Part shown: positions 16,135-62,242 of the stretch, piece after piece
Layout of the letters: each line of letters starts with the position of its first letter
Numbering within the stretch: the first letter of the stretch is position 1
DNA from: Anthoceros angustus
Taxonomy: Eukaryota > Plantae > Anthocerotophyta
Assembly: GCA_010909165.1 (NCBI GenBank)
Contig: MU008164.1
Location: 806,001 to 870,000 of the forward strand
Length of the DNA stretch: 64,000 nt
Direction of reading: 5' to 3'
Notes under the pieces: generated by a model
Databases searched by the model: none
What the model was told of the DNA's origin: nothing
Seen by the model: the letters and a program-made list of their open reading frames with translations, nothing else
Made by a program: the position numbers and the translations under genes

Positions 16135-19017
16135 TCAGTGCCGATCCCTACATGAGCAGCAGCCATCTTGAAATCGATGCACCCGATGTGCATCTCGCAC
16201 TATGATCTCTCGCTTCTCAAGACGGGACATGATCTTGGTGCTACTGTGACAGTCATTGCACATGCGCAGATTTTTGGTAACTAACAAAGTTGTGCCATCT
16301 GGTGTGTTCAACAGACCGTAGGCCAGGGCCAATTTCTCCGCATGCCCACACAAGGCATCCTCCTTTTCTTGCTCCGACATGGCCCTCAAAACCAACTCGG
16401 TTTGTGGCAAGTGCCCACCTTCTTTCAATCTCGTATTCACGCTCTGGAGTTTTGAGGAAATATCAGACCTCTTCTGCCCGACTGTGAACTCGTGCACCTC
16501 GTTCTTCACTTCAATGCAAGCCTTTGCAGGCTTCTTCACAGCACCTGCTGATTTCCTCATGCTTTCTATCCTGCTCACCTCGTCCCACCTGCTTGCGTTC
16601 GCATATATGTTCCCCAATAGCACATACCAACTTGCATCCTCTGCTTCCATGGCTACAAGATTGTCAAAGCATCGTCTTCCGCGTTCCACATCACTGTAGC
16701 TTCTACAAGCACTCAGCAAAGCTGTCCAGCCCACGACGTCATTCCCAAGCGCGGTGGTTCGCAGAACATCTTCAGCCGCATCCAGTTGGCCTGACCGGCT
16801 CAGGAGATCAACCAAGCAACTGTAGTGACGATCAGTTGGCACAATCCCATGGTCCTCCACCATGCTCCTGAAATACTCCTGGCCCTCATGGACCAGGCCT
16901 GCATGACTGCATGCCACAAAGAGACAAATGAAAGTCGTCTCATCTGGCTGGATACCTTGCTGAAGCATCTGCTCGAAACATGTGATTGCCATGGGGCCGT
17001 CACCATGTTCAGCGTACCCATTGAGCAGGGAGGTCCAAGTCACAAAATCTCTCGTAGGCAAACTGTCAAACACGTTGCGAGCATCCTCCAACCTCCCACA
17101 TTTTGCATACATGTCCACCAGGCAGTTACCAACTCTTGCATCAGCTTCAAGATCTCTTTCGCGAAGCTGGGCATGAATCTGCTTCCCCAGCTGCAGTGCT
17201 CCCACACTGGCGCAAGCCTGAAGTAGGCAGATGAATGTCACACGATCCACTGGAGTGTTGCCTTCAACCTGCATACTTGAAAAAAGAGACAACGCTTCTC
17301 TGCCCAGCCCCTGCTGAGTATATCCAGCAATCATGGCAGTACATGTCACCAAATTCTTCACCGGTAATCTGTCAAACACGTCCCGAGCATCCTCCAAGCT
17401 CCCACATTTTGAATACATGTCCACCAGGCAGCTGCCAATATAAGCGTCAGCTTCAAGGTTTCTTTCTCGAATCTGTGAGTGCAGCTGTTTTCCCTGCTGT
17501 AGTGCTCCCAAACTGGCACAGGCTTGAAGAAGGCATACGAATGTAACATGACCTGCGGGAGTCATGCCATCATCCTGCATACTTGCATACAGAGCCAGGG
17601 CTTCTTGCCCCAGCCCCTGCTGAGAATACCCTGCGATCATAGCATTCCAGGTCACCAAATCTCTCCTGGGCAACCGATCAAAAACATTGCGAGCAGCCTT
17701 CAGGTTCCCGCATTTCGCATACATGTTCACCAAGCAGTTACCGATGACTGCGTCAGCTTCAAATCCTCGCTCACGAATCTGCGAGTGAAGCTGTTTCCCC
17801 TGCTGAAGGTCCCCTAGGCTGGCACATGCTTGGAGAAGGCACACAAACGTAACATTATTCGGCGATATTAATCCATCATGCTGCATACGTTCATACAGGT
17901 TGAGAGCTTCTCTTGCAAGGCCTTGCTGACTGTATCCTCCTATGATGGCATTCCATGTCTCCACATTCCTGCTGGGCAAACCATCAAACACCTTTCTAGC
18001 ATCCTCCAAGCTACCGCATTTAGCATACATGTTCACCAGGCTGGTGGCAACAAAAGTGTCTGGCTTCCCAGCACTCGCCTGAATGTCAGCATGCACCTGC
18101 TTGCCAGAATCCAGGTCCTCAGCCGAGGCACACGCTGTCAGGGCTGCCACGAAGATATGGTTATCAGCCTTCACGCTTCCTTCTCGCATCTGTAGATAGA
18201 GCTTGACAGCCCTCTCAGGCTCTCCATGTCTGGCATGCGCAAAGATGATGGAGGACCACATGTACACATCGGGGATACTCACTTTGTTGAACACCTGCAC
18301 TGCATCCTCCAATTTGCCATGACCAGCATACATCCCAATAATCTGGCTGGCCAAGAATGCATTGGACTCGTACCCACACCTGACTGTCAGAGTATGAATT
18401 CTCCTACCACAAAAAATATCCTTCTGCACTATGCACCTCTTTAGGACCCGGTAGAAGAGACCAGCGGTCACATGGCATCCCCCGTGCACCAGGAAATCCA
18501 GCTTCTCAACAGCCTCACTCAGATCACTCTCCTCGCATGTCTGAAGTATTGCATTCTGTTCTTCGTCATTTCCCAGACTGCAAACCCGAGGGCCCCCCAT
18601 TCGAACATCCCAACTGGCCAGCTCCGAATCCACCCAAGCAGGCTTGTGGGAGCTGTTGAGCCACAGGGGCTCCTTGGAGGATTTGTGCCTGAAGTCAGGA
18701 TGCCGGGGGCTTCTTTTGTCAGCCCTGTTGTCCCACCAATCAGAGGGGTCGGAGAAGAAGTGTTCCCACAGTAGCTCCTGCCGCTCTTTCTGCCCCAATC
18801 CTTCACTGCCACAGGTACCAACAGCAACAGCAGGAGCAGCAGAACCAGAAGCAGAAGCTGGACAGAGGCCTAAGCTAGTTGCTTGTTTGCCTGGAAGGCC
18901 ATTGCTAGAACCACACCCGACATTCACCCAAGCAGGACTCTGCTGAGTAGAGGTCATGCTGGACGTCCAGTAGAGAGCAGAGGATGGCTGGGAAACGAGC
19001 TCCCTTTGCAATGCCAT
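16135..19017 (-). CDS. PLS-class PPR RNA-editing factor with N-terminal PDF motif and DYW:KP (DRH-ending) deaminase domain, 960 aa, intronless
   Basis: Architecture L-S-(P-L-S)x4-P2-L2-S2-E1-E2, then KKPAKACIEV..., CGHAEKLALAYG, KNLRMCNDCH and CSCRDRH*. The N-terminus contains WWDNR..K.SPRHPDFRHK...LWL. Confidence 0.95.
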   Translation of the reverse strand: MALQRELVSQPSSALYWTSSMTSTQQSPAWVNVGCGSSNGLPGKQATSLGLCPASASGSAAPAVAVGTCGSEGLGQKERQELLWEHFFSDPSDWWDNRADKRSPRHPDFRHKSSKEPLWLNSSHKPAWVDSELASWDVRMGGPRVCSLGNDEEQNAILQTCEESDLSEAVEKLDFLVHGGCHVTAGLFYRVLKRCIVQKDIFCGRRIHTLTVRCGYESNAFLASQIIGMYAGHGKLEDAVQVFNKVSIPDVYMWSSIIFAHARHGEPERAVKLYLQMREGSVKADNHIFVAALTACASAEDLDSGKQVHADIQASAGKPDTFVATSLVNMYAKCGSLEDARKVFDGLPSRNVETWNAIIGGYSQQGLAREALNLYERMQHDGLISPNNVTFVCLLQACASLGDLQQGKQLHSQIRERGFEADAVIGNCLVNMYAKCGNLKAARNVFDRLPRRDLVTWNAMIAGYSQQGLGQEALALYASMQDDGMTPAGHVTFVCLLQACASLGALQQGKQLHSQIRERNLEADAYIGSCLVDMYSKCGSLEDARDVFDRLPVKNLVTCTAMIAGYTQQGLGREALSLFSSMQVEGNTPVDRVTFICLLQACASVGALQLGKQIHAQLRERDLEADARVGNCLVDMYAKCGRLEDARNVFDSLPTRDFVTWTSLLNGYAEHGDGPMAITCFEQMLQQGIQPDETTFICLFVACSHAGLVHEGQEYFRSMVEDHGIVPTDRHYSCLVDLLSRSGQLDAAEDVLRTTALGNDVVGWTALLSACRSYSDVERGRRCFDNLVAMEAEDASWYVLLGNIYANASRWDEVSRIESMRKSAGAVKKPAKACIEVKNEVHEFTVGQKRSDISSKLQSVNTRLKEGGHLPQTELVLRAMSEQEKEDALCGHAEKLALAYGLLNTPDGTTLLVTKNLRMCNDCHSSTKIMSRLEKREIIVRDAHRVHRFQDGCCSCRDRH

Positions 19018-19105
19018 CGTGTGTTTTCACTTTCTTCAGTATTCTGGCTTCGACAGATTTTCTCGCTACTGACACACCGCATTCGCCAGAATTCTCGACG
19101 GTTTC

Positions 19106-22028
19106 ATGGCAATGCAGCTGGAGCTGCCATTGCTGCCACCAGCGCAGGATTTCTCATTTCCGGTTTCCGGCGCAGGAGTGATTCAGGCACGGTCTGCGTT
19201 CTTCCACACGCCCACCACTTTGAGGTCGGGGAAGCTGGGCCAGGTTTGGGCGAATTCCGGATGTGAGTTCCGCAATGGCCTACCAGGCAACAGGCCAGGA
19301 GGTTCAGGAGACTGCAATCAGCGGCCAGGGGGGGCAGCAGGCAACTGCAAAGGTGAAGGCATCAGTCAGAAAGAACGGCAGGAGCTCCTGTGGCAACATC
19401 TGTTTTCGGACCCTTCGGTATGGTGGGACAACAGGGTGGACAAGAAGAGCCCCCGGCATCCCGACTTCAGGCACAAGACCTCCAGGGAGCCGCTGTGGCT
19501 CGACAACACCCTTAAGCCAGCTTGGGTGGACTCGCAGCTGGCCAGGTGGGGTGTTGCGGTGACAGGGGGTGAGGAAGGAGAGGGAGGAGAGGCTTCGAAA
19601 TCGGAAGTGGAAGCCTTGAGGAAACGGTGCGAGGATGCGGTGCTGAGTGAGGCTGTTGAAGCCTTGGAGCTGCTGGTACAGCGGGGGTGTCATGTTACTG
19701 TTGCTGTATTGTACAGAGTCCTCAGGAGGTGCTTGGCGGATAAGGATCTTGGATGTGGTAGGCGTGTTCATGCTCTGGCTGTGGAATGTGGGTTCCAGTC
19801 CAATGCATATTTGGCCACACAGATCATCGGGATGTATGCTGCTCATGGCAAGTTGGAGGACGCAGTGCAGGTGTTCACCAAGGTGAGCAGGCCCGACCTC
19901 TACGTGTGGTCGTCCATTATCCTGGCGCATGCTCGGCTTGGACAGCCCTCGCAGGCTGTCAGCCTTTACAAGCAGATGCGAGCAGGGAGTGTGAAGCCGG
20001 ATAATAGGATTTTCGTGGCAGCCCTGAAGGCTTGTGCCGAGGCCGAGGACCTGGATTCTGGGAAACAGGTGCATGCTGATATCCCGGCAAGTGCTGTGAA
20101 GGGGGATGTGTTTGTTGCCACCAGCCTGGTGAACATGTATGCTAAATGTGGGAGCTTGGAGGAGGCTCGGAAAGTGTTTGACAGCCTACCCACGAGGAAC
20201 GTGGTGACATGGAATGCGATCATAGCAGGATATAGTCAGCAGGGTCTGGGAGGAGAAGCACTGGCATTGTATGAGAGTATGCGACGGGAAGGCATGGTGG
20301 TAGCAGATCATGTGACATTCGTTTCCCTTCTTCAAGCTTGTGCCAGTGTGCCATCGCTGAATCAGGGGAGGGCGATTCACTTACAGGTTCGTGGGAGAGG
20401 GTTGGAAGGCGATGCAGTCATTGGTAACTCCTTGGTGAATATGTATGCGAAATGTGGGAGCTTGGTGGATGCTCGGGAAGTCTTTGATCGGTTGCCCAGG
20501 AGAGATGTGGTGACATGGAATTCCATGATAGCAGGGTATACCCAGCAGGGACTCGGTAGAGAAGCCCTGGCTTTGTATGAAAGTATGCAGCTCGAGGGTG
20601 TAACCCCGGGTGACCATGTTACATTTTTGTGTCTCGTTCAAGCATGCACGAGTGTGGGAGCTCTGCAGCAGGGGAAGGAGATCCACTTACAGATTCGGGA
20701 AAGAGGTCTCGAACCTGATGTTCTCATTGGCAACTGCCTGGTCAGTATGTATGCTAAATGTGGGAGCTTGAAGGAGGCTCGGGAAGTCTTTGACAGTTTG
20801 ACCAGAAAAGATGTTGTGACGTGGAATTCCATGATCTCAGGATACTCTCAGCAGGGGCTTGGGCACGAAGCTCTGGCTTTGTATGCGTCTATGCAACATG
20901 AGGGCATTACACCTGCGAATCGTGTCACGTTTCTGTCCCTGCTTCAGGCATGTGCCTCAGCAGGAGCAGTGCAGCTTGGGAAGCAGCTTCACTTCCAGAT
21001 TCGGGATGGAGGACTTGAAGATGATGGGCAAGTTGGAAACGGCCTCGTGGACATGTATGCTAAGTGTGGGAGCTTGGAGGATGCTGTCGGAGTGTTTCAC
21101 AGTTTACCCAGAAGAGATGTGGTGACATGGACTGCCATGCTCAATGGGTATGCTGTACATAGCGACGGCCCGATGGCAATACAGTGCTTTGAAAAGATGC
21201 TGCAGCAAGGAATCATCCCAGATGAGACGACTTTTCTATGTCTCTTAGTGGCATGCAGTCATGCGGGCCTGGTGCAGGAGGGCCAGAGGTATTTCAGGAT
21301 GATGGAGAAATACGGGACTGTGCCCAATAACTATCACTACAGTTGCATGGTTGATCTCCTTGGCCGGTCAGGCCAACTAGACGAGGCTGAGAATATGTTG
21401 GAAAACGAGTCTGTTGTGAAGGACAGTGTGGCCTGGACAGCTCTACTGAGTGCCTGCAAGGGCTATGGCGATCTTGAGCGAGGAAGGCGATGCTTCGACC
21501 GACTTGTAGCATTGGATCCTAAAGATGCAAGCCCCTACGTCCTTTTGGGAACCATCTATGCAAGTGCGGGCAGGTGGGATGATGTGGACAGGGTTGAGAG
21601 TTTAAGGAAGGCAGCAGGTGCGCTGAAGAAGCCTGCAAAAGCATGCATTGAAGTAGATAGAGAAGTCCACGAGTTCACAGTAGGAGAAGATAGGACCGAC
21701 ATTTCGGCAACGCTGAGGAGCGTGAACATTAGGTTGAAGGAGGAAGGGGCCATGTGCCTCAAACAGAGCTTGTGTTGAAGCCTGTCTCTGAGCAGGAGAA
21801 GGAGGATGCTCTGTGCGGACATGCAGAAAGTTGGCTTTGGCATATGGTCTGCTGAACACACCGGACGGCACAACGTTGTTAGTCACCAAGAATCTGCAGA
21901 TGTGCAATGACTGCCATAGCAGCACAAAGGTCATGTCCCGTCTTGAGAGGCGAGAGATCGTTGTGAGAGACGGACATCGAGTTCATCGTTTTGTGGATGG
22001 CTCTTGCTCGTGCGGAGATCGGCATTAA
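19106..22028 (+). CDS. Paralogous PLS-PPR editing factor with PDF motif and DYW:KP (DRH) domain; two apparent 1-nt frameshifts in the DYW domain
   Basis: ORF 19106..21778 has the same motif architecture. The DYW domain continues (HAEKLA, CNDCH, CSCGDRH* at 22028) after indels at ~21750 (GGGG versus GGGGG in the copy at 27107) and ~21828 (cagaaag versus cagagaag). Confidence 0.9.
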
Positions 22029-22889
22029 CCCGGCGTGGTGTCTGGTGTCCTCGGATTTCCTTCAGAAAAGTCGTTGAAATGCTTGCATCGTGATGATGCT
22101 ATCCATGTCCTTGATGGAATTATTCTGAGAACTTGACCAACGGAAGATGCTCGCCTCGCGCTTCAATGAAGCCATTCCATACGGCAATCGGAGAAGGATG
22201 GAGACTGTGAGGGACCTGAACGGGGAGCAATAGGGCGCGACAAGGCCTTCGAGCAGGCAGTTTGCGCTCATGCCTGCACCGTCAGGGCGTCTAGGGCCTC
22301 ATCACGACCGCACAGGCTTACTCTTTCTTACTAAGAAACAAATGTGAAGTGACACAAATTTTAGTGATCTAAAACTCACTCAGGTTATGGCGGTGAGAAG
22401 CGGCATTAACCTATCAAACCAAAACCAGGCACAGCCGACCAACACGCTCGTGTGCGGGTGAGGACTTGGAAGCGCAAATGAGCTTGCACGGTAAGTAGAA
22501 TTTATTAGAACCGCTTTAATAATCGGATATTAAGAACACTTACCCGTCATGAAATTACACTCCCGGTGGTGTGCTTCTTCTCGGCCGACATCCTGATGGC
22601 TGATCGTGAAAGCTACAATCTCTTCTATAGAACATACCGCATCGCAGGTACATCCACATGCGGTCTTGTTGTGCCGTGCATGCACATGCTGAAAACTCGG
22701 CTTTGACATCCACCACAATCTGCGAATTTGCGATGACTAACTACCACAGAGCACATAGTTTTGGGAGGGGTTCATCGATGTCTGGATGGCTCTTGCTCTT
22801 GCGGAGATAGGCTTTAGACAGCATGCACAGGACATTCGAAGCTCAAATGCTACAACGGTGACAAGGTAAGCACAAGAATCAATATTGTA

Positions 22890-25800
22890 CAGAGTCCTCA
22901 GGAGGTGCTTGGCGGATAAGGATCTGCATGAGGCTAGTGCACAAAGAGAATGCCAGCCATGCGCTCCTTTGTCTTCCTGTCTTCCTGCATAACCGTTGCT
23001 GCAGAGCCTTTCCCAACTATAGTATCTTGCCACAGCGAACAGGGTGGACAAGAAGAGCCCCGGCATCCCGACTTCAGGCACAAGACCTCCAGGGAGCCGC
23101 TGTGGCTCGACAACACCCTTAAGCCAGCTTGGGTGGACTGCAGCTGGCCAGGTGGGGTGTTGCGGTGACAGGGGTGAGGAAGGAGAGGGAGGAGGCTTCG
23201 AAATCGGAAGTGGAAGCCTTGAAACGGTGCGAGGATGCGGTGCTGAGTGAGGCTGTTGAAGCCTTGGAGCTGCTGGTACAGCAGGGTGTCATGTTACTGT
23301 TGCTGTATTGTACAGAGTCCTCAGGAGGTGCTTGGCGGATAAGGATCTTGGATGTGGTAGGCGTGTTCATGCTCTGGCTGTGGAATGTGGGTTCCAGTCC
23401 AATGCATATTTGGCCACACAGATCATCAGGATGTATGCTGCTCATGGCAAGTTGGAGGACGCAGTGCAGGTGTTCACCAAGGTGAGCAGGCCCGACCTCT
23501 ACGTGTGGTCGTCCATTATCCTGGCGCATGCTCGGCTTGGACAGCCCTCGCAGGCTGTCAGCCTTTACAAGCAGATGCGAGCAGGAGTGTGAAGCCGGAT
23601 AATAGGATTTTCGTGGCAGCCCTGAAGGCTTGTGCCGAGGCCGAGGACCTGGATTCTGGGAAACAGGTGCATGCTGATATCCCGGCAAGTGCTGTGAAGG
23701 GGATGTGTTTGTTGCCACCAGCCTGGTGAACATGTATGCTAAATGTGGGAGCTTGGAGGCTCGAAAGTGTTTGACAGCCTACCCACGAGGAACGTGGTGA
23801 CATGGAATGCGATCATAGCAGGATATAGTCAGCAGGGTCTGGGAGGAGAAGCACTGGCATTGTATGAGGTATGCGACAGGAAGGCATGGTGGTAGCAGAT
23901 CATGTGACATTTCCCTTCTTCAAGCTTGTGCCAGTGTGCCATCGCTGAATCAGGGAGGGCGATTCACTTACAGGTTCGTGGGAGAGGGTTGGAAGGCGAT
24001 GCAGTCATTGGTAACTCCTTGGTGAATATGTATGCGAAATGTGGGAGCTTGGTGGATGCTCGAAGTCTTTGATCAGTTTGCCCAGGAGATGTGGTGACAT
24101 GGAATTCCATGAGTATACCCAGCAGGGACTCGGTAGAGAAGCCCTGGCTTTGTATGAAAGTATGCAGCTCGAGGTGTAACCCGGGTGACCATGTTACATT
24201 TTTGTGTCTCGTTCAAGCATGCACGAGTGTGGGAGCTTGGAGGAGGCTTCGAAATCGGAAGTGGAAGCCTTGGAGCTGCCATTGCTGCCACCAGCCTGGT
24301 GAACATGTATGCTAAATGTGGGAGCTCTGCAGCAGGGAAGGAGATCCACTTACAGATTCAGGCACAAGACCTCCAGGGAGCCGCTGTGGCTCGACAACAC
24401 CCTTAAGCCAGCTTGGGTGACAAATCTTGCCCGCCAGCAAGGGAACGCCCTTGCTCCTGACCAACATTCCTCGCAGCCTGATAAGGGGTTGAGAAGATAG
24501 TACTCAAAGCACTCCTTGTTGCATTGGGAATGTGTGGTTATTGCTTTAACAATATGTCAATTGCTTGTGTACTCAGAGCCGGATTAATAGTCTTCATCCT
24601 CCTCATATTCGTCGTTCTTATCATAGTGCAAGCGATACTTGTATGGCTCATTAGCCCCAACATCTTCCACACGCCCACCACTTTGAGGTCAGGAAGCTGG
24701 GCCAGGTTTGGGCGAATTCCGGATGTGAGTTCCGGCCTACCAGGCAACAGGCCAGGAGGTTCAGGAGACTGCAATCAGCGGCCAGGGGGCAGCAGGGGCT
24801 GCAAAGGTGAAGGCATCAGTCAGTCAGAAAGAACGGCAGGAGCTCCTGTGGCAACATCTGTTTTCGGACCCTTCGGTATGGTGGGACAACAGGGTGGACA
24901 AGAAGAGCCCCAGCATCCCGACTTCAGGCACAAGACCTCCAGGGAGCCGCTGTGGCTCGACAACACCCTTAAGCCAGCTTGGGTGGACTCCAGCTGGCCA
25001 GGTGGGGTGTTGCGGTGACAGGGGTGAGGAAGGAGAGGGAGGAGGCTTCGAAATCGGAAGTGGAAGCCTTGAGGGACAGTGCGAGGATGCGGTGCTGAGT
25101 GAGGCTGTTGAAGCCTTGGAGCTGCTGGTACAGCAGGGTGTCATGTTACTGTTGCTGTATTGTACAGAGTCCTCAGGAGGCGGATAAGGATCTTGGATGT
25201 GGTAGGCGTGTTCATGCTCTGGCTGTGGAATGTGGGTTCCAGTCCAATGCATATTTGGCCACACAGATCATCAGGATGTATGCTGCTCATGGCAAGTTGG
25301 AGGACGCAGTGCAGGTGTTCACCAAGGTGAGCAGGCCCGACCTCTACGTGTGGTCGTCCATTATCCTGGCACATGCTCGGCTTGGACAGCCCTCGCAGGC
25401 TGTCAGCCTTTACAAGCAGATGCGAGCAGGAGTGTGAGCCGGATAATAGGATTTTCGTGGCAGCCCTGAAGGTCTGCCGAGGACCTGGATTCTGGGAAAC
25501 AGGTGCATGCTGATATCCCGGCAAGTGCTGTGAAGGGGATGTGTTTGTTGCCACCAGCCTGGTGAACATGTATGCTAAATGTGGGAGCTTGGAGGCTCGA
25601 AAGTGTTTGACAGCCTACCCACGAGGAACGTGGTGACATGGAATGCGATCATAGCAGGATATAGTCAGCAGGGTCTGGGAGGAGAAGCACTGGCATTGTA
25701 TGCGACGGGAAGGCATGGTGGTAGCAGATCATCGCATTCGTTTCCCTTCTTCAAGCTTGTGCCAGTGTGCCATCGCTGAATCAGGGAGGGCGATTCACTT

Positions 25801-26400
25801 ACAGGTTCGTGGGAGAGGGTTGGAAGGCGATGCAGTCATTGGTAACTCCTTGGTGAATATGTATGCGAAATGTGGGAGCTTGGATGCTCGAAGTCTTTGA
25901 TCAGTTTGCCCAGGAGATGTGGTGACATGGAATTCCATGATAGCAGGGTATACCCAGCAGGGACTCGGAGAAGCCCTGGCTTTGTATAAGTATGCAGCTC
26001 GAGGGTGTAACCCGGGTGACCATGTTACATTTTTGTGTCTCGTTCAAGCATGCACGAGTGTGGGAGCTCTGCAGCAGGGAAGGAGATCCACTTACAGATT
26101 CAGGAAAGAGGTCTCGAACCTGATGTTCTCATTGGCAACTGCCTGGTCAGTATGTATGCTAAATGTGGGAGCTTGAAGGAGGCTCAGGAGTCTTTGACAG
26201 TTTGACCAGAAAAGATGTTGTGACGTGGAACTTGGAACAGGCTCACCACTCATGCTCCGCATCCGTTTACAGCAGGACCATCCCCAGGACTCTCTTTGGC
26301 GTTACCGGCTCATCAACCACGTTATCTGACTCCTGCAAGACAGTGAAAGCAAGCATTGAGGCCAGGCTGGGTGTCATTTGAACATGATGGGCAAGTTGGA
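22890..26400 (+). repeat. Scrambled, indel-rich patchwork of PPR gene 19106-22028 fragments and BRF1 3' fragments
   Basis: Two degraded PPR copies (~23040-24250 and ~24660-26230), short shuffled PPR pieces (24240-24420), and inserts matching 28640-28900 (at 24420-24665) and 28995-29150 (at 26221-26378). The joins are 8-10 bp microhomologies. Confidence 0.8.
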
Positions 26401-27391
26401 AACGGCCTCGTGGACATGTATGCTAAGTGTGGAGCTTGGAGGATGCTGTCAGGTGTTTCACAGTTTACCCAGAAGAGATGTGGTGACATGGACTGCCATG
26501 CTCAATGGGTATGCTGTACATAGCGACGGCCCGATGGCAATACAGTGCTTTGAAAAGATGCTGCAGCAAGGAATCATCCCAGATGAGACGACTTTTCTAT
26601 GTCTCTTAGTGGCATGCAGTCATGCGGGCCTGGTGCAGGAGGGCCAGAGGTATTTCAGGATGATGGAGAAATACGGGACTGTGCCCAATAACTATCACTA
26701 CAGTTGCATGGTTGATCTCCTTGGCCGGTCAGGCCAACTAGACGAGGCTGAGAATATGTTGGAAAACGAGTCTGTTGTGAAGGACAGTGTGGCCTGGACA
26801 GCTCTACTGAGTGCCTGCAAGGGCTATGGCGATCTTGAGCGAGGAAGGCGATGCTTCGACCGACTTGTAGCATTGGATCCTAAAGATGCAAGCCCCTACG
26901 TCCTTTTGGGAACCATCTATGCAAGTGCGGGCAGGTGGGATGATGTGGACAGGGTTGAGAGTTTAAGGAAGGCAGCAGGTGCGCTGAAGAAGCCTGCAAA
27001 AGCATGCATTGAAGTAGATAGAGAAGTCCACGAGTTCACAGTAGGAGAAGATAGGACCGACATTTCGGCAACGCTGAGGAGCGTGAACATTAGGTTGAAG
27101 GAGGAAGGGGGCCATGTGCCTCAAACAGAGCTTGTGTTGAAGCCTGTCTCTGAGCAGGAGAAGGAGGATGCTCTGTGCGGACATGCAGAGAAGTTGGCTT
27201 TGGCATATGGTCTGCTGAACACACCGGACGGCACAACGTTGTTAGTCACCAAGAATCTGCGAATGTGCAATGACTGCCATAGCAGCACAAAGGTCATGTC
27301 CCGTCTTGAGAGGCGAGAGATCGTTGTGAGAGACGGACATCGAGTTCATCGTTTTGTGGATGGCTCTTGCTCGTGCGGAGATCGGCATTAA
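26378..27391 (+). pseudogene. C-terminal duplicate of the PPR-DYW:KP gene (P2-L2-S2-E1-E2-DYW:KP in frame)
   Basis: ORF 26378..27391 reads continuously ...KKPAKACIEV...EGGHVPQTELVLK...CGHAEKLA...MCNDCH...CSCGDRH*. It is near-identical to 21010-22028. Confidence 0.8.
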
Positions 27392-28260
27392 CCCCGGCGT
27401 GGTGTCTGGTGTCCTCGGATTTCCTTCAGAAAAAGTCGTTGAAATGCTTGCATCGTGATGATGCTATCCATGTCCTTGATGGAATTATTCTGAGAACTTG
27501 ACCAACGGAAGATGCTCGCCTCGCGCTTCAATGAAGCCATTCCATACGGCAATCGGAGAAGGATGGAGACTGTGAGGGACCTGAACGGGGAGCAATAGGG
27601 CGCGACAAGGCCTTCGAGCAGGCAGTTTGCGCTCATGCCTGCACCGTCGGGGCGTCTAGGGCCTCATCACGACCGCACAGGCTTACTCTTTCTTACTAAG
27701 AAACAAATGTGAAGTGACACAAATTTTAGTGATCTAAAAACTCACTCAGGTTATGGCGGTGAGAAGCGGCATTAACCTATCAAACCAAAACCAGGCACAG
27801 CCGACCAACACGCTCGTGTGCGGGTGAGGACTTGGGAAGCGCAAATGAGCTTGCACGGTAAGTAGAATTTATTAGAACCGCTTTAATAATCGGATATTAA
27901 GAACACTTACCCGTCATGAAATTACACTCCCGGTGGTGTGCTTCTTCTCGGCCGACATCCTGATGGCTGATCGTGAAAGCTACAATCTCTTCTATAGAAC
28001 ATACCGCATCGCAGGTACATCCACATGCGGTCTTGTTGTGCCGTGCATGCACATGCTGAAAACTCGGCTTTGACATCCACCACAATCTGCGAATTTGCGA
28101 TGACTAACTACCACAGAGCACATAGTTTTGGGAGGGGTTCATCGATGTCTGGATGGCTCTTGCTCTTGCGGAGATAGGCTTTAGACAGCATGCACAGGAC
28201 ATTCGAAGCTCAAATGCTACAACGGTGACAAGGTAAGCACAAGAATCAATATTGTACAAG
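27392..28260. repeat. Direct repeat of 22029-22890 (PPR 3' flank)
   Basis: Near-identical sequence that differs mostly by homopolymer length. Confidence 0.85.
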
Positions 28261-34089: not shown

Positions 34090-37000
34090 ATGGGGGGCGA
34101 CAAGGCTCAATCCAATGCTGCTGCTCCAGGGAAGAAGAAGGGAGCGTCGAAGGGATCCAAGGGAGCGCGGGACGAGGCTGATGAGATCGGGGACGACGGA
34201 GTTGTTGCTGACAAGGTTGTGCCCGGAGGAAAGAAGAAGGGGAAAGGGAAGAAGGGATCCAGGCAGGCTTTCGACGATGATGATTATTTTATCGAGCCGG
34301 AGGCCGGATCTGGTAATTCCAAGGCGACCATGGGAGAAAAGCAGGTGCCTGTTAATGAAATTTTGGTAGGTAATGAGGTTGGGATTGACAGGACGCGGGA
34401 GCAGTTGAATGGTGAGGAGACGGGGAAGGATGTGACGGATGAGGTCGCATTCACGGGTAAGAAGAAGGCCAAGGGGAAGGGGAAGAAGACTGCTTCCTAC
34501 AAGCAACTGCAAGACTTTGATGAGGACTTTGCGCCGGATGAGGAGGTTGGACGATTCGGCGTTGTGGAGGAGTTGCCAGTGGTAGAGGAGGCTGAAATTT
34601 TGCCGGAGGTAGTAGATGAGGTAGTGTTTTCGGGGAAGAAGAAGAGTAAAGGGAAGAAGAGCTCGGTGCAGGTGCCGGATTCCGAGTTCTTGGTAGACAC
34701 TTCAGTTTATGCTTACGGTTTGGAGTATGAAGCAGCCGTTTTGTCGGATGCGGAAGAGCCAATTCTCTTTACGGGAAAGAAGAAGGCGAAAAAGGGGAAG
34801 AAGGAAAAGGTGGTGGTGAATGATGATGAGTACGCTGTGCCTGCCGATTCTGACGCTGTTTTGGACTCTGAAGCCCCGGAGGAGCCTGCGGTCTCTCCGG
34901 TGGCTGATAGTAAAACTGTTCCTCCCCCGGAGATGGGGGAGGATGACATTCTGCAAGCTGATGGGAAGAAGAGCAAAAAAGGGAAAAAGGGAGGCAAGGC
35001 GCAAGCTTATGAGGAGATTAATGCTGTTCTGGCTAAGCTGGAGGCTCCCAAGGTTCAAGCCCCAAAGGCTAGTGTGGATCCTGTCGTCCAGTCTGAGGCT
35101 GAGCCTCCACAGGTCTCAAGTTCATCAGCCTCTTCAAAGAAGAAGCAAAAGAAGGCCACGAAAAAGAGTGGGAGAACTGCGCAGGAGGAGAAGGATCTGT
35201 TTTCCATACTTATAGAATTGGATGGACCGGTAGTGGATAGAACCCCGGAAGCACCGGCTCCTGTTTCTGAGGCTGCATCTGCCGAGGATGCCAAACAGGA
35301 GTCAGTTGATGTCACTGCATCAGCACCCGTTGAGAGCACCACGGAAGTAGAAGAGGCTGTGCAGTCAGCAGCTGCCAAGAAGAAAAAGAAGAAAAAGGAA
35401 AAGGAGAAAGCAAAAGCAGCTGGGACTGACAAACAAGCTGAAGCAGCAGAAGAAACCAAAGTAGTCAAAGAAGAGTCAAAGGCTAAGGTACCTGATAAGA
35501 AATTGCCAAAACATGTGCGTGAAATGCAAGAGCGCCTGGCGCGAATGAAGGAGCTTGAAGAAAAGAGAAGGCAAGAAGAAGAAGAGAGACGTCGAAAAGA
35601 AGAAGAGGAACAAGCAAGGCTGGAAGAATTGGAGAGGCAGAAGGAGGAGGCCAAACGAAGGCGCAAGGAGCGAGAAAAAGAGAAGCTCTTGCAGAAGAAG
35701 AAAGAGGGGAAGCTGCTGAATGAGAAGCAGAAACAGGAGCAGAGACGGTTAGCAGCCATGAGAGAGCAGTTTATTGCTCAGACTGGGGGTCCTTTAGGTG
35801 ACGATTTAGCTTCTGAGGAAGTGAAGGCGAGACCCAAACCCAAATACGAGACAAAAAAGAAAAAACGCCCTAGTGCAGCTCAGACTGACAGCTCACTAGA
35901 TGTTGACACACCTGCAGTACCTGAGGTTCAAGAGGTTGAGGTAGATGCTACTTTGGAGCTGCCACAAGTGCCAGAGGAAGTGGTTGAGCCAGAAGAGCCT
36001 TTGAAGGAGGAGGAGCAGGAGGAGGAAGAGGAACAGGAGCAGGAGCACGAGGAGGAGGAGGAGGAGGATGAGGAGGAGGAGGAGGACTGGGATGCTAAGA
36101 GCTGGGAGCAAGAAGTTGCTCTTCCTGTTATAAAATCAGCGTTTGCAGAAGAAGAAGAAGAAGACTCTAGCTCTACCACAAGTGGAAAGCTGTCGAGGGC
36201 CCTTTCTAGGCAAGATTCTAGCAGGTCTTCTGTTTCACGGCAGGACTCAGTGAGCAGTGTCCCTTCCAAGCCACCAGCAGGGCCGCCCAAGGCCTCACCA
36301 GTGAAAGTGAAGCCTGGACTGCAACAGCAGAAAGAGAGTGAAAATGAAGGTGAAACCGACAGTGAAGATGAAACTGAGAGCGAGGAAGAAGATGCAGACG
36401 TGAAGAGGAGACAAGATGCCAAAGCAAAACGAGAGGCTAGGAAAGCAGAAGCTCTGACTAAGCGGAGTGCAGAAGATCTGAGGTCACCAATCTGCTGTAT
36501 TCTTGGCCACGTCGATACAGGGAAGACAAAATTGCTCGATTGTATCCGAAGGACAAATGTTCAAGAAGGAGAGGCTGGTGGGATCACTCAGCAGATTGGA
36601 GCCACTTATTTCCCCATGGAAAACATCCGAGAGAGAACAAAAGAAATACAGTCTCAGGCTAAACTTCGAGTACCAGGCTTGCTTGTGATTGACACACCAG
36701 GCCATGAGTCCTTCACGAATCTACGGGCGAGAGGTTCTAGCTTATGTGACATAGCCATTCTGGTGATTGACATTATGCATGGTCTGGAACCACAGACAAT
36801 AGAATCCTTGAATTTGCTGAAATCCCGGAAGACACCATTTGTGGTCGCCTTAAATAAGGTGACAATGCCATTGCCTCTCTGCCCGCATGTTGCACCACAA
36901 GTTCCTTGACAAGACAAGATGGGTGTTACTTCTGGCTTTGCTTTATGCTATTTGTCTCTCATGGTGTGCGACTAGGTTTCTGACCAGTCAAGCTGATGGG

Positions 37001-47264: not shown

Positions 47265-49113
47265 TCAGCCGTTATGCGCACGATGATCAATGACAAACTT
47301 TCGTAACCGATGCAAGGCAACATGCATTGTTTGATCATCTACCATGGCAAAGCATAGTCTGAACCAGCCAGGTTCCTTGCACCGGCAGGCACTTCCCGGA
47401 GTGACGTTCAGGCCCACATTATAGAGTAACTCCCTGAACAGACTCAGCTCGCCGTCTCTGTTCTTGATCCTTGGTAAGGGCCTTATCCAGCAAAAGAAGC
47501 CGGCATCACATTCTACAAATTCAATGCCAGCTTGCTGCAATCCGTGACGCACCACTCTCCAACGTTCCCTCAGTCTCCTCTGATTCTCCGGGATATAAGA
47601 TTTCACAAATTCCTTGTCCGAAAGGACAGAATGAAGAACCTGTTGTGTCTCGGTGGAGACCGAGCTGAACCGAGTCAACCTGCCTGCAGCATCAAGAACC
47701 TGTTGATTCCACGAATAAATGAGCCCCACCCGGAAACCTGGGATGCCAAGAACCTTCGACAGTCCATAAATTAGGTGAACTCTGCTCGCACACTGTGGCC
47801 GCTGGGTCACAAGCTTCGCAAAGCTGACAAACTTCGCACTCCCGTGTACGCAACCGGCGTAAATTTCATCACAGATGAGATGAATATCTTTCTCCCTCAC
47901 AAAATCCAGCAGCTGCAGAAGGTACTCCTCATCATACACTGTGCCGACAGGATTGCAAGGCGAAGTCATCAGCAAGGCCCTCACAGTCCTCCCCTGTTTC
48001 TTGGCCTCTTCGTACGCCTTCTCCAGCGAACCTTTGGTCAACAAAAAGTTGTTCTTGCTACTTGACTGGACTGGAATGAGTTCCACCTGACTTCGCCATT
48101 TGACATCCCTCTCAAACCTGAAACCGGCGACACAAAATAAGCACAGAGAAGTTGACAAAACACACACAAACAAAACCTTCTCAACAACTTTTCCAGCTAA
48201 GAAACCACTGCCGCGCACCCGCTGTACACTGGAGCAGGAACAAGGACCGCATTCCCAGCCTCTGCCAAGCAGAAAGCCAACAACTCGATGGCCGCGGTTG
48301 CCCCGGTGGTGACAACCATCCTATCCGCGTCAAAATGCAAGTTGCCGCCAAAAGCCTCGTCCATGAAGCTGGCCAGGGCCTGCAAGAGGGCATCGCCCGC
48401 AGGCAGTCAGCCACCAAAGCATGCGGCTTAACCAAACCTCGACCTTTACTCGCAATGCAGCTTACCGATCGGAAGATCGGAAGTCCATGGTACACATCGG
48501 GGTAGCCGGCTATGGCCGTAAAGCCGAGAATGCTCAGAACCTCCTCCGCGGGACCAGTACCATGGGAGGCGAACCACTGGTCCAGCAGACTCAGTGACAG
48601 CTGCCATCACACACAAAAACACACCATACTACATCAAAATCGCACCACATTCTCGTCCACCTTTGCAAGCACCGCACGAACGCAGGAACGCAGGCACGCA
48701 AACCCTAGCATCTACCCAGGCGCGCTTCCCGACGCCGGCCCGCTCACCGTGTTCTCAGACAAGCCAAGCTGGATGCAGCCGGCCGGGTTGCGCTGAGGGT
48801 GGAACGCGTTGCGGTTGGACTCCTCCCAGCCCTGGTAGTAGGCCGCCACCTCGGAGTCGGGCTGGAGGACGGCCACAGCCCGCGCCGCCACAGCCACGGA
48901 CGCATGCGAGTGCGCGTCCGAGCCCGGTCCTGCGTCGCGCGCTTCCTGCTCGTGATCCGGCGTCTGCTCCGGCTCCGCCGCCTGGACGTGGGACTGGCGG
49001 GATCGCCGCAGCCGCAGCTGCATGAAGTAAAAGAGCGCGCAGGGGATGATGGAGCCGAACACGATGCCCAGGCGGCCCTGGAGCACGCCTTGCAGCGGCA
49101 CGATCACGCGCAT
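47265..49113 (-). CDS. ACC-synthase-like PLP-dependent aminotransferase of the ACS10/ACS12 type
   Basis: N-terminal MRVIVPLQGVLQGRLGIVFGSIIPCALFYFMQL, then YYQGW...NPAGCIQLGLSEN, VVTTGATAAIELLAFCLAEAG...VPAPVY, SPCNPVG, ICDEIYAG, YGLSKVLGIPGFRVG, TRFSSVS, LNVTPGSAC and GWFRLCFA. Confidence 0.92.
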
Positions 49114-59773: not shown

Positions 59774-62242
59774 ATGGAAGCCACAGTGCTGGCCTGGCAA
59801 GCCCCCGGCGCGGGCTGCATGAAGGCGGCCCGGAACGGGCCGTCTTCCTCGCTCGTCAAGGTGGTGGCTGCGAGACGGGTCCCAGTCGCGCCGGGAGGCG
59901 AGCCGGCCTTGCTGGTGGTCAGAAGGATCAAGAAATGGCAGCAGGAAAAGGAAAAGGAACAGGAAAAGGCGGCGCCGGAGAAGGAACGGGAAAAGGCGGC
60001 GCCGGAGAAGGGACGGGCAAAGGCGGCGCCGGAGAAGGAACGGGCAAAGGCGGCGCCAGAGAAGGAGACGCAGCAGTACCGGCTGAAGGAAGGCGAGTGG
60101 GTTGCGGAGCTGGCGGACAGGCTTGGAGTCCGGGTGCAGGATCTGCAGGCGCTCAACCCGAGCGTGAACCTGGACCGGGTGTTCCCCCGGCAGGTGATCC
60201 TCATCCCCAAGCCGAAAGGAAGTTTTGCGGAAGGCGCACGGGAAGCGCTCGCTCTCCGGCCTTCTGTGCAGATTGTGGACTCCCTGGAAGCGGAATCGGA
60301 GCCCCAAGGGGAGGCGGAGCAGGATTTGGCAAAGCGGGGCCAGGACGGCGGAGCCGCGTTTCGTGCTGCTGAGTCGTCGGGAAAGAGCCAGGATGGGAGC
60401 ACCAAGGACAGCGGAGTCCGGTCTGGCGAATCGCGAGGCGCGGAACCTTCGGAGGAGGCGATGGAGGAGTATATGGTCCAGCCCGGGGATTATCTTGCGG
60501 ACATCGCTGCCAGGCACGGAGTGAAGCTCAAGGCGTTGATTGCCCTAAACAAGCTGAATTACGAGGATCGGATTCGAGTCGGCCAGATTCTTTTGCTGCC
60601 TCCGGATGAGCCATCTCATGTACTTGCCTGATGCCCCTGTCGCCAGTTTTGCTCACCATGTGAAGTTGAGGCTATAGTAGCTGAATTGTCCCGTCCCTTG
60701 TGGTGCTACAGAATGAAGGATCCTGTCTTTGCTCTGACCGTTTGCTCAGGCCTCTTTCTTGCCAGTCGTTGTCCATTTCAAGGTAGAAAACAGCCCCCAG
60801 TGTTGCTTGATAGCACAGATCCGTTCTGTTGCAGTGAGGGGAGGGGCAGAGTGGCTGATGTTCGTGTGTGCTGGTGGTGTTTGTCTTCAGTTTGAGATTC
60901 AGAGAACGTCGCAGGTGTCGTCTGTGTGGACGGTTGCGAGAGGGCTTCCGTATGATCCCATCTTCCAGGCGGCAGCTCTGCTGTCCGGCATTATTGTTGC
61001 TTGTGGGATGGTGGCTGCAAAGGGGAGGCAGCAGCCGGTGCAGGAGGGAGGGAGGAAGGTGCGGGTCCTGGGATCTGAGTTCTCGGGGAGATCGGGTCTG
61101 GGGTTTTGGTTTGGCCGGAGCAGGTATTCGCGCCAGTTGGAAGCTGCTGCCCAGTCGGTTGCATCCACTATCCTGTCTACCGTCCAGGGGGCAGATGGGG
61201 CGATGGTTGGGCATGGGTTTGCCACTGGGAAGTCTCAGCAGGAGGCCATCGAAGTAGCTTTCCGAGCAGCGTTGAGCTCGCTGAAACAGCCCTTGGCAAC
61301 CGTGGCTGTCTTTTCGCTGAGCAGGCTTCCTCAGAGCCGCATCCCAGCTGGTAAGAATGCTTCCACTGAGATGAGTGCATGTGGCATTTCGTTGTCCTGA
61401 GGCGACATTCGTCGGGCATTTGAAGCTTAGCAAAGCTGCTGCCGTGTTGATGCAGGTGTGAAAGCAGCAGATGCTGCAGCCTTGCTGACCAAGCTCATAC
61501 CGGAAGAGCTTCCTTCGTTCTCGGGAGTCATGACCTTGGGTGGAGGCGGGTTTCTCAGCCTGGCCAACTTGGAGAGCAAGGAGGGATCGCTTGAGGAGTG
61601 GGCTGCAGTGCTGCTATTCGCTGCCCCCGAGAACTCTATCAAGGTGGGCTGGGCTGCGCAAGGTGAGGGCGTCCAGCAGGCTGTCCAAACTGCTGCGGAA
61701 GAGCTAAAGCGGAAAGTAAGCCATGCTGCTTGAGTTTTCTTTCTCCACAGCCAAGTGTATATTTTTGAGATGCATTCTCGTTAATGACTGTCATCTCTGG
61801 ACGAAAATGTCTCTCTTCGTCCCTGTCAGCTTGTGCGCAGTGCAAAACTCAAAGCTGTGGTTGCCAATGTCTCGGGGAACAACGGGAAGGCCGTTCTGGA
61901 TGAGGTGAGTAGTGCAACTGTCGGCTTACTAGCTTCAACCTGGTTTTCGCTCCTGGGCTGACTCTGATGCATCTGTTGTGGTTGCAACAGCTTGCATCCA
62001 GTTTCCCCCAGGCGTCACTCTACGAAGTAAGTGCAGCAGGAGCCAAGCTTACAACAGCCTCGGATTGGCAGTTGACGGTGGGAGACGCCCCATCATCAGT
62101 CATTGCATCTGAAGGTGTCATCCTGTTTGGATTGACCACTGACGCAGACTTCGGTGGTGCCTTCTTCGCTAGTGTTTTAGGTCAGTGGTTGTATGGAAGG
62201 CACGTCCATGTGACCGCAAGACCACCATTATCACCAAAATAA
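59774..62242 (+). CDS. Putative organelle-targeted LysM-LysM-TM-FIST-like protein (3' end uncertain)
   Basis: Exon 1 (59774-60619) encodes two LysM motifs (YRLKEGEWVAELADRLGVRVQDLQALNP...RQVILIP and YMVQPGDYLADIAARHGVKLKALIALNKL...GQILLLP). A phase-consistent GT-AG intron 60620-60890 leads to a hydrophobic helix (PIFQAAALLSGIIVACGMVAA). Further exons 61456-61715, ~61830-61904 and ~61991-62180 splice in frame. Confidence 0.7.

Follow-up and report, generated by a model that had tools for sequence, protein, structure and literature searches.

In the usual description of PPR editing factors, a targeting peptide is followed by a PPR array and E/DYW domains. A special group among them are the DYW:KP proteins of hornworts (Gerke 2020 and Gutmann 2020, as cited in PMC9478123), which comprise candidate and designer U-to-C editing factors, show a set of hallmarks in the DYW domain and fall into the two subgroups DRH and GRP; U-to-C catalysis has been demonstrated for the designer KP proteins (PMC9478123). 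The second closely related system is the OSB family of single-stranded DNA (ssDNA)-binding proteins. Here, the PDF motif, a unit of 50 amino acids (aa), follows an OB-like domain in one to four copies and was reported to be responsible, and in the case of AtOSB1 sufficient, for ssDNA binding (PMC6963530; PMC4166229; PMC6451138). In this study, we describe a gene of Anthoceros angustus that joins the two systems, with a PDF module placed N-terminally of a PPR array and a DYW:KP domain. The gene, termed gene A, lies in a stretch of 64,000 nucleotides (assembly GCA_010909165.1, contig MU008164.1, positions 806,001 to 870,000 of the forward strand), which is referred to as the window; all coordinates are positions within it.

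Gene A (16135-19017, minus strand) is an uninterrupted open reading frame (ORF) of 960 aa and consists of a presequence, the PDF module, a PLS-type PPR array, an E motif and a DYW:KP domain of the DRH subtype, in this order. Pfam analysis identified PPR (4.3e-82), E_motif (8.9e-16, residues 774-835) and DYW_deaminase (6.7e-35), which together represent the PPR array, E motifs and DYW deaminase-like domain of the PLS class. In the full-length AlphaFold2 model, with a mean predicted local distance difference test (pLDDT) value of 87.2, the presequence (residues 1-72; 18802-19017, minus strand) is disordered with a pLDDT of about 25. It is rich in Ser, Thr and Ala, residues 1-76 containing 25% Ser/Thr and 13% Ala together with two acidic and two basic residues, and is a putative organelle-targeting peptide. 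The PDF module itself (residues 76-139; 18601-18792, minus strand) reaches a pLDDT of about 90 or more and is matched by a hidden Markov model (HMM) of the module at 18610-18789 with 109.7 bits. A low-confidence stretch (residues 141-149) separates it from the PPR-like helical hairpins and the E motif (residues 150-830; 16528-18570, minus strand), which were delimited using the model and the Pfam PPR families. About 20 helix pairs, from H150 to H824, are present in the model before the DYW:KP deaminase-like domain follows (residues 831-960; 16138-16527, minus strand).

An alignment of this last domain with canonical DYW:PG proteins revealed KKPAKACIEV at the position of the PG box, a gap of four residues at the canonical xHP, HAE instead of HSE (CGHAEKLA), CNDCH and a terminal DRH. 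The domain therefore has KP in place of PG, HAE combined with CxDCH, no xHP and DRH at the C-terminus, which is the definition of DYW:KP proteins of the DRH subgroup (PMC9478123). Judged by this sequence, gene A is a candidate U-to-C editing enzyme, and features of this kind would by themselves mark the window as most likely hornwort nuclear DNA. Both the Pfam results and the DYW alignment agree with a preliminary description of the window, which had placed the module N-terminal to a PLS-type PPR array ending in DYW:KP.

Pfam contains no PDF model, and scanning the module against it returned no family; a word-indexed search with the module region found one protein only (P0001). To search with a profile, we combined five module copies, two from the window and three from P0001, and compared them with 1.84 billion representative proteins. 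This resulted in 1123 proteins at E <= 1e-3, of which 57 were found at E <= 1e-30. Most of the matches are 250-520 aa long and carry one to five modules, mostly near the C-terminus. The consensus of proteins in this size range shows an N-terminal OB-like region followed by repeats of the type W..L..NP..WWDNR..K.NP..PDFKHK.TGE.LWL....P.WV, and a Pfam SSB domain was detectable in 39 of 100 PDF-bearing proteins of 250-520 aa. The named matches include 'Protein OSB3, chloroplastic/mitochondrial' (Anthurium), 'protein OSB1, mitochondrial-like' (Populus, Drosera) and 'protein OSB4, chloroplastic' (Tarenaya), with E-values from 1.8e-33 to 1.6e-25. Thus, the HMM comparison with OSB motifs that the preliminary description had proposed yielded significant matches to proteins named OSB1, OSB3 and OSB4. 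An alignment of 20 PPR-linked modules with six modules of named OSB proteins using hhalign gave a probability of 99.9% and an E-value of 1.7e-31 over 57 columns, and BLASTP detected 52% identity over 60 aa (E 5e-23) between the gene A module and 'OSB1, mitochondrial-like' of Drosera. With these values, a chance similarity to the PDF motif of OSB proteins was rejected. The modules of gene A and of its neighbor gene B both contain the PDF triplet together with the flanking WWDNR...K and LWL...P.WV; in the 20 PPR-linked modules, D and F of the triplet are invariant and P is nearly so. The near-invariant positions of the module are mostly aromatic or basic (W, F, R, K). We conclude that the module is almost certainly homologous to the PDF motif and joined to a PPR editing factor, and the earlier assignment as OSB-type PDF motif is borne out by the profile matches, hhalign and BLASTP alike.

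Across the profile matches, the number of PDF copies per protein ranges from one to 13. Arrays of nine to 13 tandem modules, which is beyond the one to four copies of OSB proteins, were observed in P0002 (Kingdonia uniflora KAF6142360.1), P0003-P0005 and P0010, and P0002 has in addition a weak SSB-like match near the C-terminus. In the annotated gene model P0037 (Coptis chinensis KAF9616283.1), three PDF modules are located N-terminally of a kinesin motor, which means either that PDF has a further unexpected fusion partner or that gene models were merged.

The second PPR gene with a PDF module, gene B (19106-22028, plus strand), is a diverged paralog of gene A with the same architecture and a disrupted DYW:KP domain; both proteins are 66% identical (tblastn). 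Its module is located at 19370-19549 (plus strand, HMM match of 108.1 bits). The translations of the core segments proposed before, 18628-18771 (minus strand) in gene A and 19388-19531 (plus strand) in gene B, reproduced both peptides quoted in the preliminary description, and both modules, which are about 60 aa long, are situated inside long PPR ORFs. The same description had stated that the module is much better conserved between the paralogs than the flanking linkers, and this comparison holds. Using the Nei-Gojobori method, we obtained 77-80% aa identity for the module (80% over 55 codons) and a ratio of nonsynonymous to synonymous substitutions (dN/dS) of 0.105, in contrast to 41% identity both for the presequence/N-terminus (dN/dS 0.43) and for the linker (dN/dS 0.67). 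The PPR array is 71% identical with a dN/dS of 0.225. A dS of about 0.9 identifies genes A and B as old paralogs, in which the module is under strong purifying selection while both flanks drift.

AlphaFold2 prediction of the module, with 150 diverse modules as alignment, resulted in a compact helix-strand-strand-(strand)-helix fold (pLDDT 94.6, predicted template modelling score 0.81). A sequence search of the PDB with the module gave chance-level matches to CP29 only, and a Foldseek search of the PDB with the model retrieved nothing below E = 4.8. The segment that links the module to the first conserved PPR-like helix differs in length among the PDF-PPR proteins, from about 20 to 39 residues, and its sequence shows little conservation. 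Because of this variable linker and the domain limits in the AlphaFold2 prediction, the module, as modelled, acts as a self-contained, flexibly tethered domain that immediately follows a Ser/Thr/Ala-rich presequence.

The comparison with the OSB proteins reveals both shared and distinct features. They have the PDF unit W..(L/F)F..P..WWDNR..K..P..PDF(K/R)HK.....LWL....P.WV in common, with 40-52% identity of the modules to named OSB proteins, and the copy number is variable in both groups (one to three in PDF-PPR proteins, one to four in OSBs). However, gene A lacks the SSB-like OB fold, its module is N-terminal (residues 76-139 of 960) instead of C-terminal, and the partner is an RNA-binding PPR array with DYW:KP. 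Also the expected context differs, with RNA editing for gene A and surveillance of mitochondrial and plastid DNA recombination for the OSBs. As neither gene A nor gene B has a Pfam SSB match and the PDF module of gene A is not C-terminal, gene A is, by its domain content, not an OSB protein and has only the PDF domain in common with them. With the hornwort PPR-DYW:KP proteins of the DRH and GRP subgroups it shares the PLS array, the E motifs, KP for PG, HAE, the missing xHP and a terminal DRH, but the additional folded PDF domain at the N-terminus sets it apart, and the designer proteins are without PDF (PMC9478123).

We then asked how widely the fusion is distributed, based on the best 150 of the 1123 profile matches. 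Nine of these 150 are PPR proteins, each with one to three modules, and PDF is always N-terminal to the PPR array. In the lycophyte Diphasiastrum complanatum (O6H91_01G119900, its homeolog 12G041000, and 01G051500) and in the ferns Ceratopteris richardii (KP509_14G038700), Adiantum capillus-veneris (GOP47_0009037, GOP47_0026042 and GOP47_0023879) and Pteridium aquilinum (two transcripts), the PDF-PPR proteins terminate with E motifs and lack a DYW domain. Public annotations list the fern and lycophyte proteins simply as hypothetical or PPR-containing. The module of some homologs is preceded by no more than 16-28 residues. The presequences of P0148 and P0174 (Pteridium, Ceratopteris) are unusually rich in His and Gln, with runs of H, and are unlike typical transit peptides.

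Using the DYW:KP domain of gene A as query, we retrieved approximately 40 proteins of the KP type and approximately 35 canonical ones, with identities of up to 86% to DYW:KP domains from Logan. The PDF module was present on three of the approximately 40 KP-type relatives, namely P0181 (DRH) as well as P0187 and P0192 (both GRP), all of which originate from the Logan samples SRR33208241/2. In the limited sample of about 35 canonical DYW:PG proteins, not a single one carried the module, which is in agreement with the earlier statement that canonical PLS-DYW editing factors do not have it. The idea that the fusion is tied to DYW:KP did not hold: since E-type PDF-PPR proteins without DYW exist in the lycophyte and the three ferns, and most KP relatives lack PDF, an exclusive link was rejected. 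The fusion is common to hornwort-type, lycophyte and fern PLS-class PPR proteins and is neither exclusive to nor universal among DYW:KP proteins. The sequences preceding P0185 and P0270, two close homologs without PDF, were searched for a hidden module, which revealed none in contig L002 and only a doubtful remnant (score 5.8) in L003. A second PDF-PPR gene was detected in Logan SRR33208241 (L004:6666-7418, plus strand), 1.5 kb downstream of P0181 and ending at the contig edge. Beyond its module, the sequence is closely similar to the corresponding region of genes A and B, and the position of this gene next to P0181 implies that tandem PDF-PPR pairs occur in a related organism, too. In a tree of the modules (60 columns), the PPR-linked modules cluster, with six to seven label changes compared to 16.4 for shuffled labels. 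A single clade of PPR-linked modules was not rejected by the approximately unbiased (AU) test (p-AU 0.348), the 60 columns being too short to resolve one versus several origins.

Fusions of PPR editing factors with other domains have been surveyed before. The RRM, MORF and RanBP2 zinc finger cases are comparable to gene A in that a nucleic-acid-binding or helper domain is fused to or partnered with a PPR factor, but PDF is not among the listed fusions (PMC13386178). In this kingdom-wide survey of 2026, the terms 'OSB' and 'PDF' are absent from the text; Pfam-based fusion surveys would miss PDF, as Pfam has no model for it. Our literature search found no report of a PDF-PPR fusion; Zaegel 2006, Gerke 2020 and Gutmann 2020 were outside its coverage. 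By this search, PDF-PPR combines an established domain with an established family in an arrangement that is new.

In the window, genes A and B are arranged head-to-head, and their start codons are 88 bp apart (19017-19106). With this spacing, the promoters must be tiny, shared, or located within the partner gene. The ORF of gene B (19106-21778) encodes 890 aa, in which Pfam found PPR repeats and the E motif, but not DYW_deaminase. The rest of its DYW:KP domain, from the active site onward, lies in another frame (21813-22028) because of two 1-bp deletions relative to copy C, a duplicate of gene B, one in a G run at about 21746 and the other in the HAE active-site codons at about 21828. Consequently, the reading frame through DYW:KP is not intact, with a stop at 21776-21778 and disrupted HAE codons. 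These deletions (21740-21835) reflect either a young pseudogene and real decay or a sequencing or assembly error. The preliminary description had presented both PPR genes as PDF-PPR-DYW:KP genes; this is correct for gene A, whereas in gene B the DYW domain is broken, leaving gene A as the only one of the two with an intact PDF-PPR-DYW:KP architecture.

A six-frame motif scan and an HMM scan located further module copies in the window. The region 22880-27665 is a nest of partial gene B duplicates that are 95-99% identical and contain frameshifts and an internal gap. A partial decayed copy (23038-24246, plus strand) is 96.6% identical to 19430-20672 (blastn) and retains the 3' half of the PDF module at 23049-23141, where HMM positions 25-55 are matched. 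Scraps of gene B follow at 24282-24419, with a decayed module remnant at 24357-24422 in the HMM scan. The recent duplicate copy C (24663-27665, plus strand) is composed of the blocks 24663-26230 and 26378-27665, which are 94.8% and 99.1% identical to gene B (blastn). It has a frameshift within the PDF module (24828-24991, split HMM matches) and an internal gap, and the ORF of its DYW:KP tail (26378-27391) is intact. This nest points to recent tandem duplication and decay at a PPR locus. The neighboring genes are ordinary plant nuclear genes. A 939-aa ORF at 34090-36909 (plus strand) matches GTP_EFTU (1.1e-28) with its last 140 residues, while Pfam assigns nothing to the approximately 800 residues ahead. 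This ORF probably represents exon 1 of an IF2-like translation GTPase that has a long N-terminal extension. An exon-like ORF at 47265-48218 (minus strand) belongs to the class I/II aminotransferases (1.6e-57), and the protein encoded at 59774-60631 (plus strand) contains two LysM domains (3.6e-19).

Concerning the function of the module, we slightly favor the reading, based on its sequence relationship to the OSB motif, that it serves as an accessory single-stranded nucleic-acid-binding or tethering domain of the PPR editing factor. PPR arrays bind RNA in parallel orientation, their N-terminal repeats contacting its 5' side, and the site of DYW action is immediately 3' of the footprint. A PDF domain ahead of the array would therefore be placed on the 5' side of this footprint. 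If the domain remains on the mature protein in the organelle and binds single-stranded nucleic acid irrespective of sequence, it could on its tether reach RNA 5' of the recognized sequence and add affinity for the transcript. Alternatively, it might hold the factor on ssDNA at the nucleoid, where the nascent RNA would be met early. In either case, PDF would go with PLS-class editing factors in general, E-type as well as DYW:KP, and not with the U-to-C reaction itself. A more specific form of this idea is a lineage-specific helper for the PLS-class factors of seed-free plants, with a MORF-like enhancing role in those lineages that lack MORF: the factor would be held on the single-stranded non-template DNA or the nascent RNA at the nucleoid, and editing, including U-to-C, would take place co-transcriptionally. 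We regard this specific form as unlikely.

Several points speak against an accessory nucleic-acid-binding function. AtOSB1 and AtOSB2 prefer ssDNA to RNA (PMC4166229), so that RNA binding by PDF is an extrapolation. Designer DYW:KP editors are active without such an N-terminal domain (PMC9478123) and most of the DYW:KP relatives do not carry it, which indicates that PDF is not needed for catalysis. The short N-termini of 16-28 residues in some homologs make the cleavage point of the presequence uncertain, the PDB searches provided no solved fold relative that could hint at a binding mode, and the taxonomic picture, drawn from the best 150 of the 1123 matches, is incomplete.

Instead of binding nucleic acid, the module could be a protein-protein or oligomerisation module that recruits the PPR factor to OSB/nucleoid complexes or to other editing factors, for example by joining E-type PDF-PPR proteins with DYW proteins acting in trans. 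We consider such a role possible, though not likely. It would fit the arrays of one to 13 PDF copies and the E-type PDF-PPR proteins, which lack a DYW domain and need a catalytic partner. Furthermore, none of the plants with the fusion (hornworts, lycophytes and ferns) is a seed plant, and the MORF helper proteins are not known from outside the seed plants. Finally, AtOSB2 was reported to form a tetramer (PMC6963530). However, ssDNA binding, which is known for AtOSB1 and AtOSB2, is the only function reported for the motif (PMC6963530; PMC4166229; PMC6451138), and the near-invariant W, F, R and K residues fit a nucleic-acid surface, although they would equally fit a hydrophobic core.

The position of the module directly after the disordered presequence, and the mere 16-28 residues ahead of it in some homologs, would also be consistent with a function in import or sorting, either as part of an extended targeting region or as a nucleoid localisation signal without any role in editing or RNA binding. 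This is rather improbable, as the same domain is C-terminal and repeated in the OSB proteins, which does not suit a cleavable targeting sequence, and as its compact fold is under strong purifying selection, unlike typical transit peptides. Still far less credible is that the module has no function and was left behind by domain shuffling, or that it arose artificially through gene-model fusion or assembly. It is true that the locus is a nest of decaying duplicates, that gene B itself is broken and that the odd PDF-kinesin pairing in the Coptis gene model may be an artefact. But in gene A, the module and PPR-DYW are located in one uninterrupted ORF of 960 codons, and on account of this single ORF we rejected a fusion of gene A created by gene modelling or assembly. 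In addition, a dN/dS of 0.105 at a dS of about 0.9 indicates long-term constraint, and at least six other taxa show the same arrangement, in independent assemblies as well as in annotated genomes.

The identification of the PDF-PPR architecture widens the known range of the PDF motif beyond the OSB proteins and discloses a blind spot for PDF in Pfam-based domain-fusion surveys. A conserved, folded PDF domain from the organellar DNA-maintenance machinery at the N-terminus of PPR proteins would add a new accessory component to the editing apparatus, and the fusion occurs in hornwort-type, lycophyte and fern proteins, which means in lineages with very heavy editing, including U-to-C. This raises the question of whether PDF binds RNA as well as ssDNA, increases the efficiency of editing and couples editing to the nucleoid. 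The answer may have a bearing on programmable U-to-C and C-to-U editors, which are now built without such a domain. If PDF indeed acts as a MORF-like tethering helper, its addition could improve designer PPR editors.

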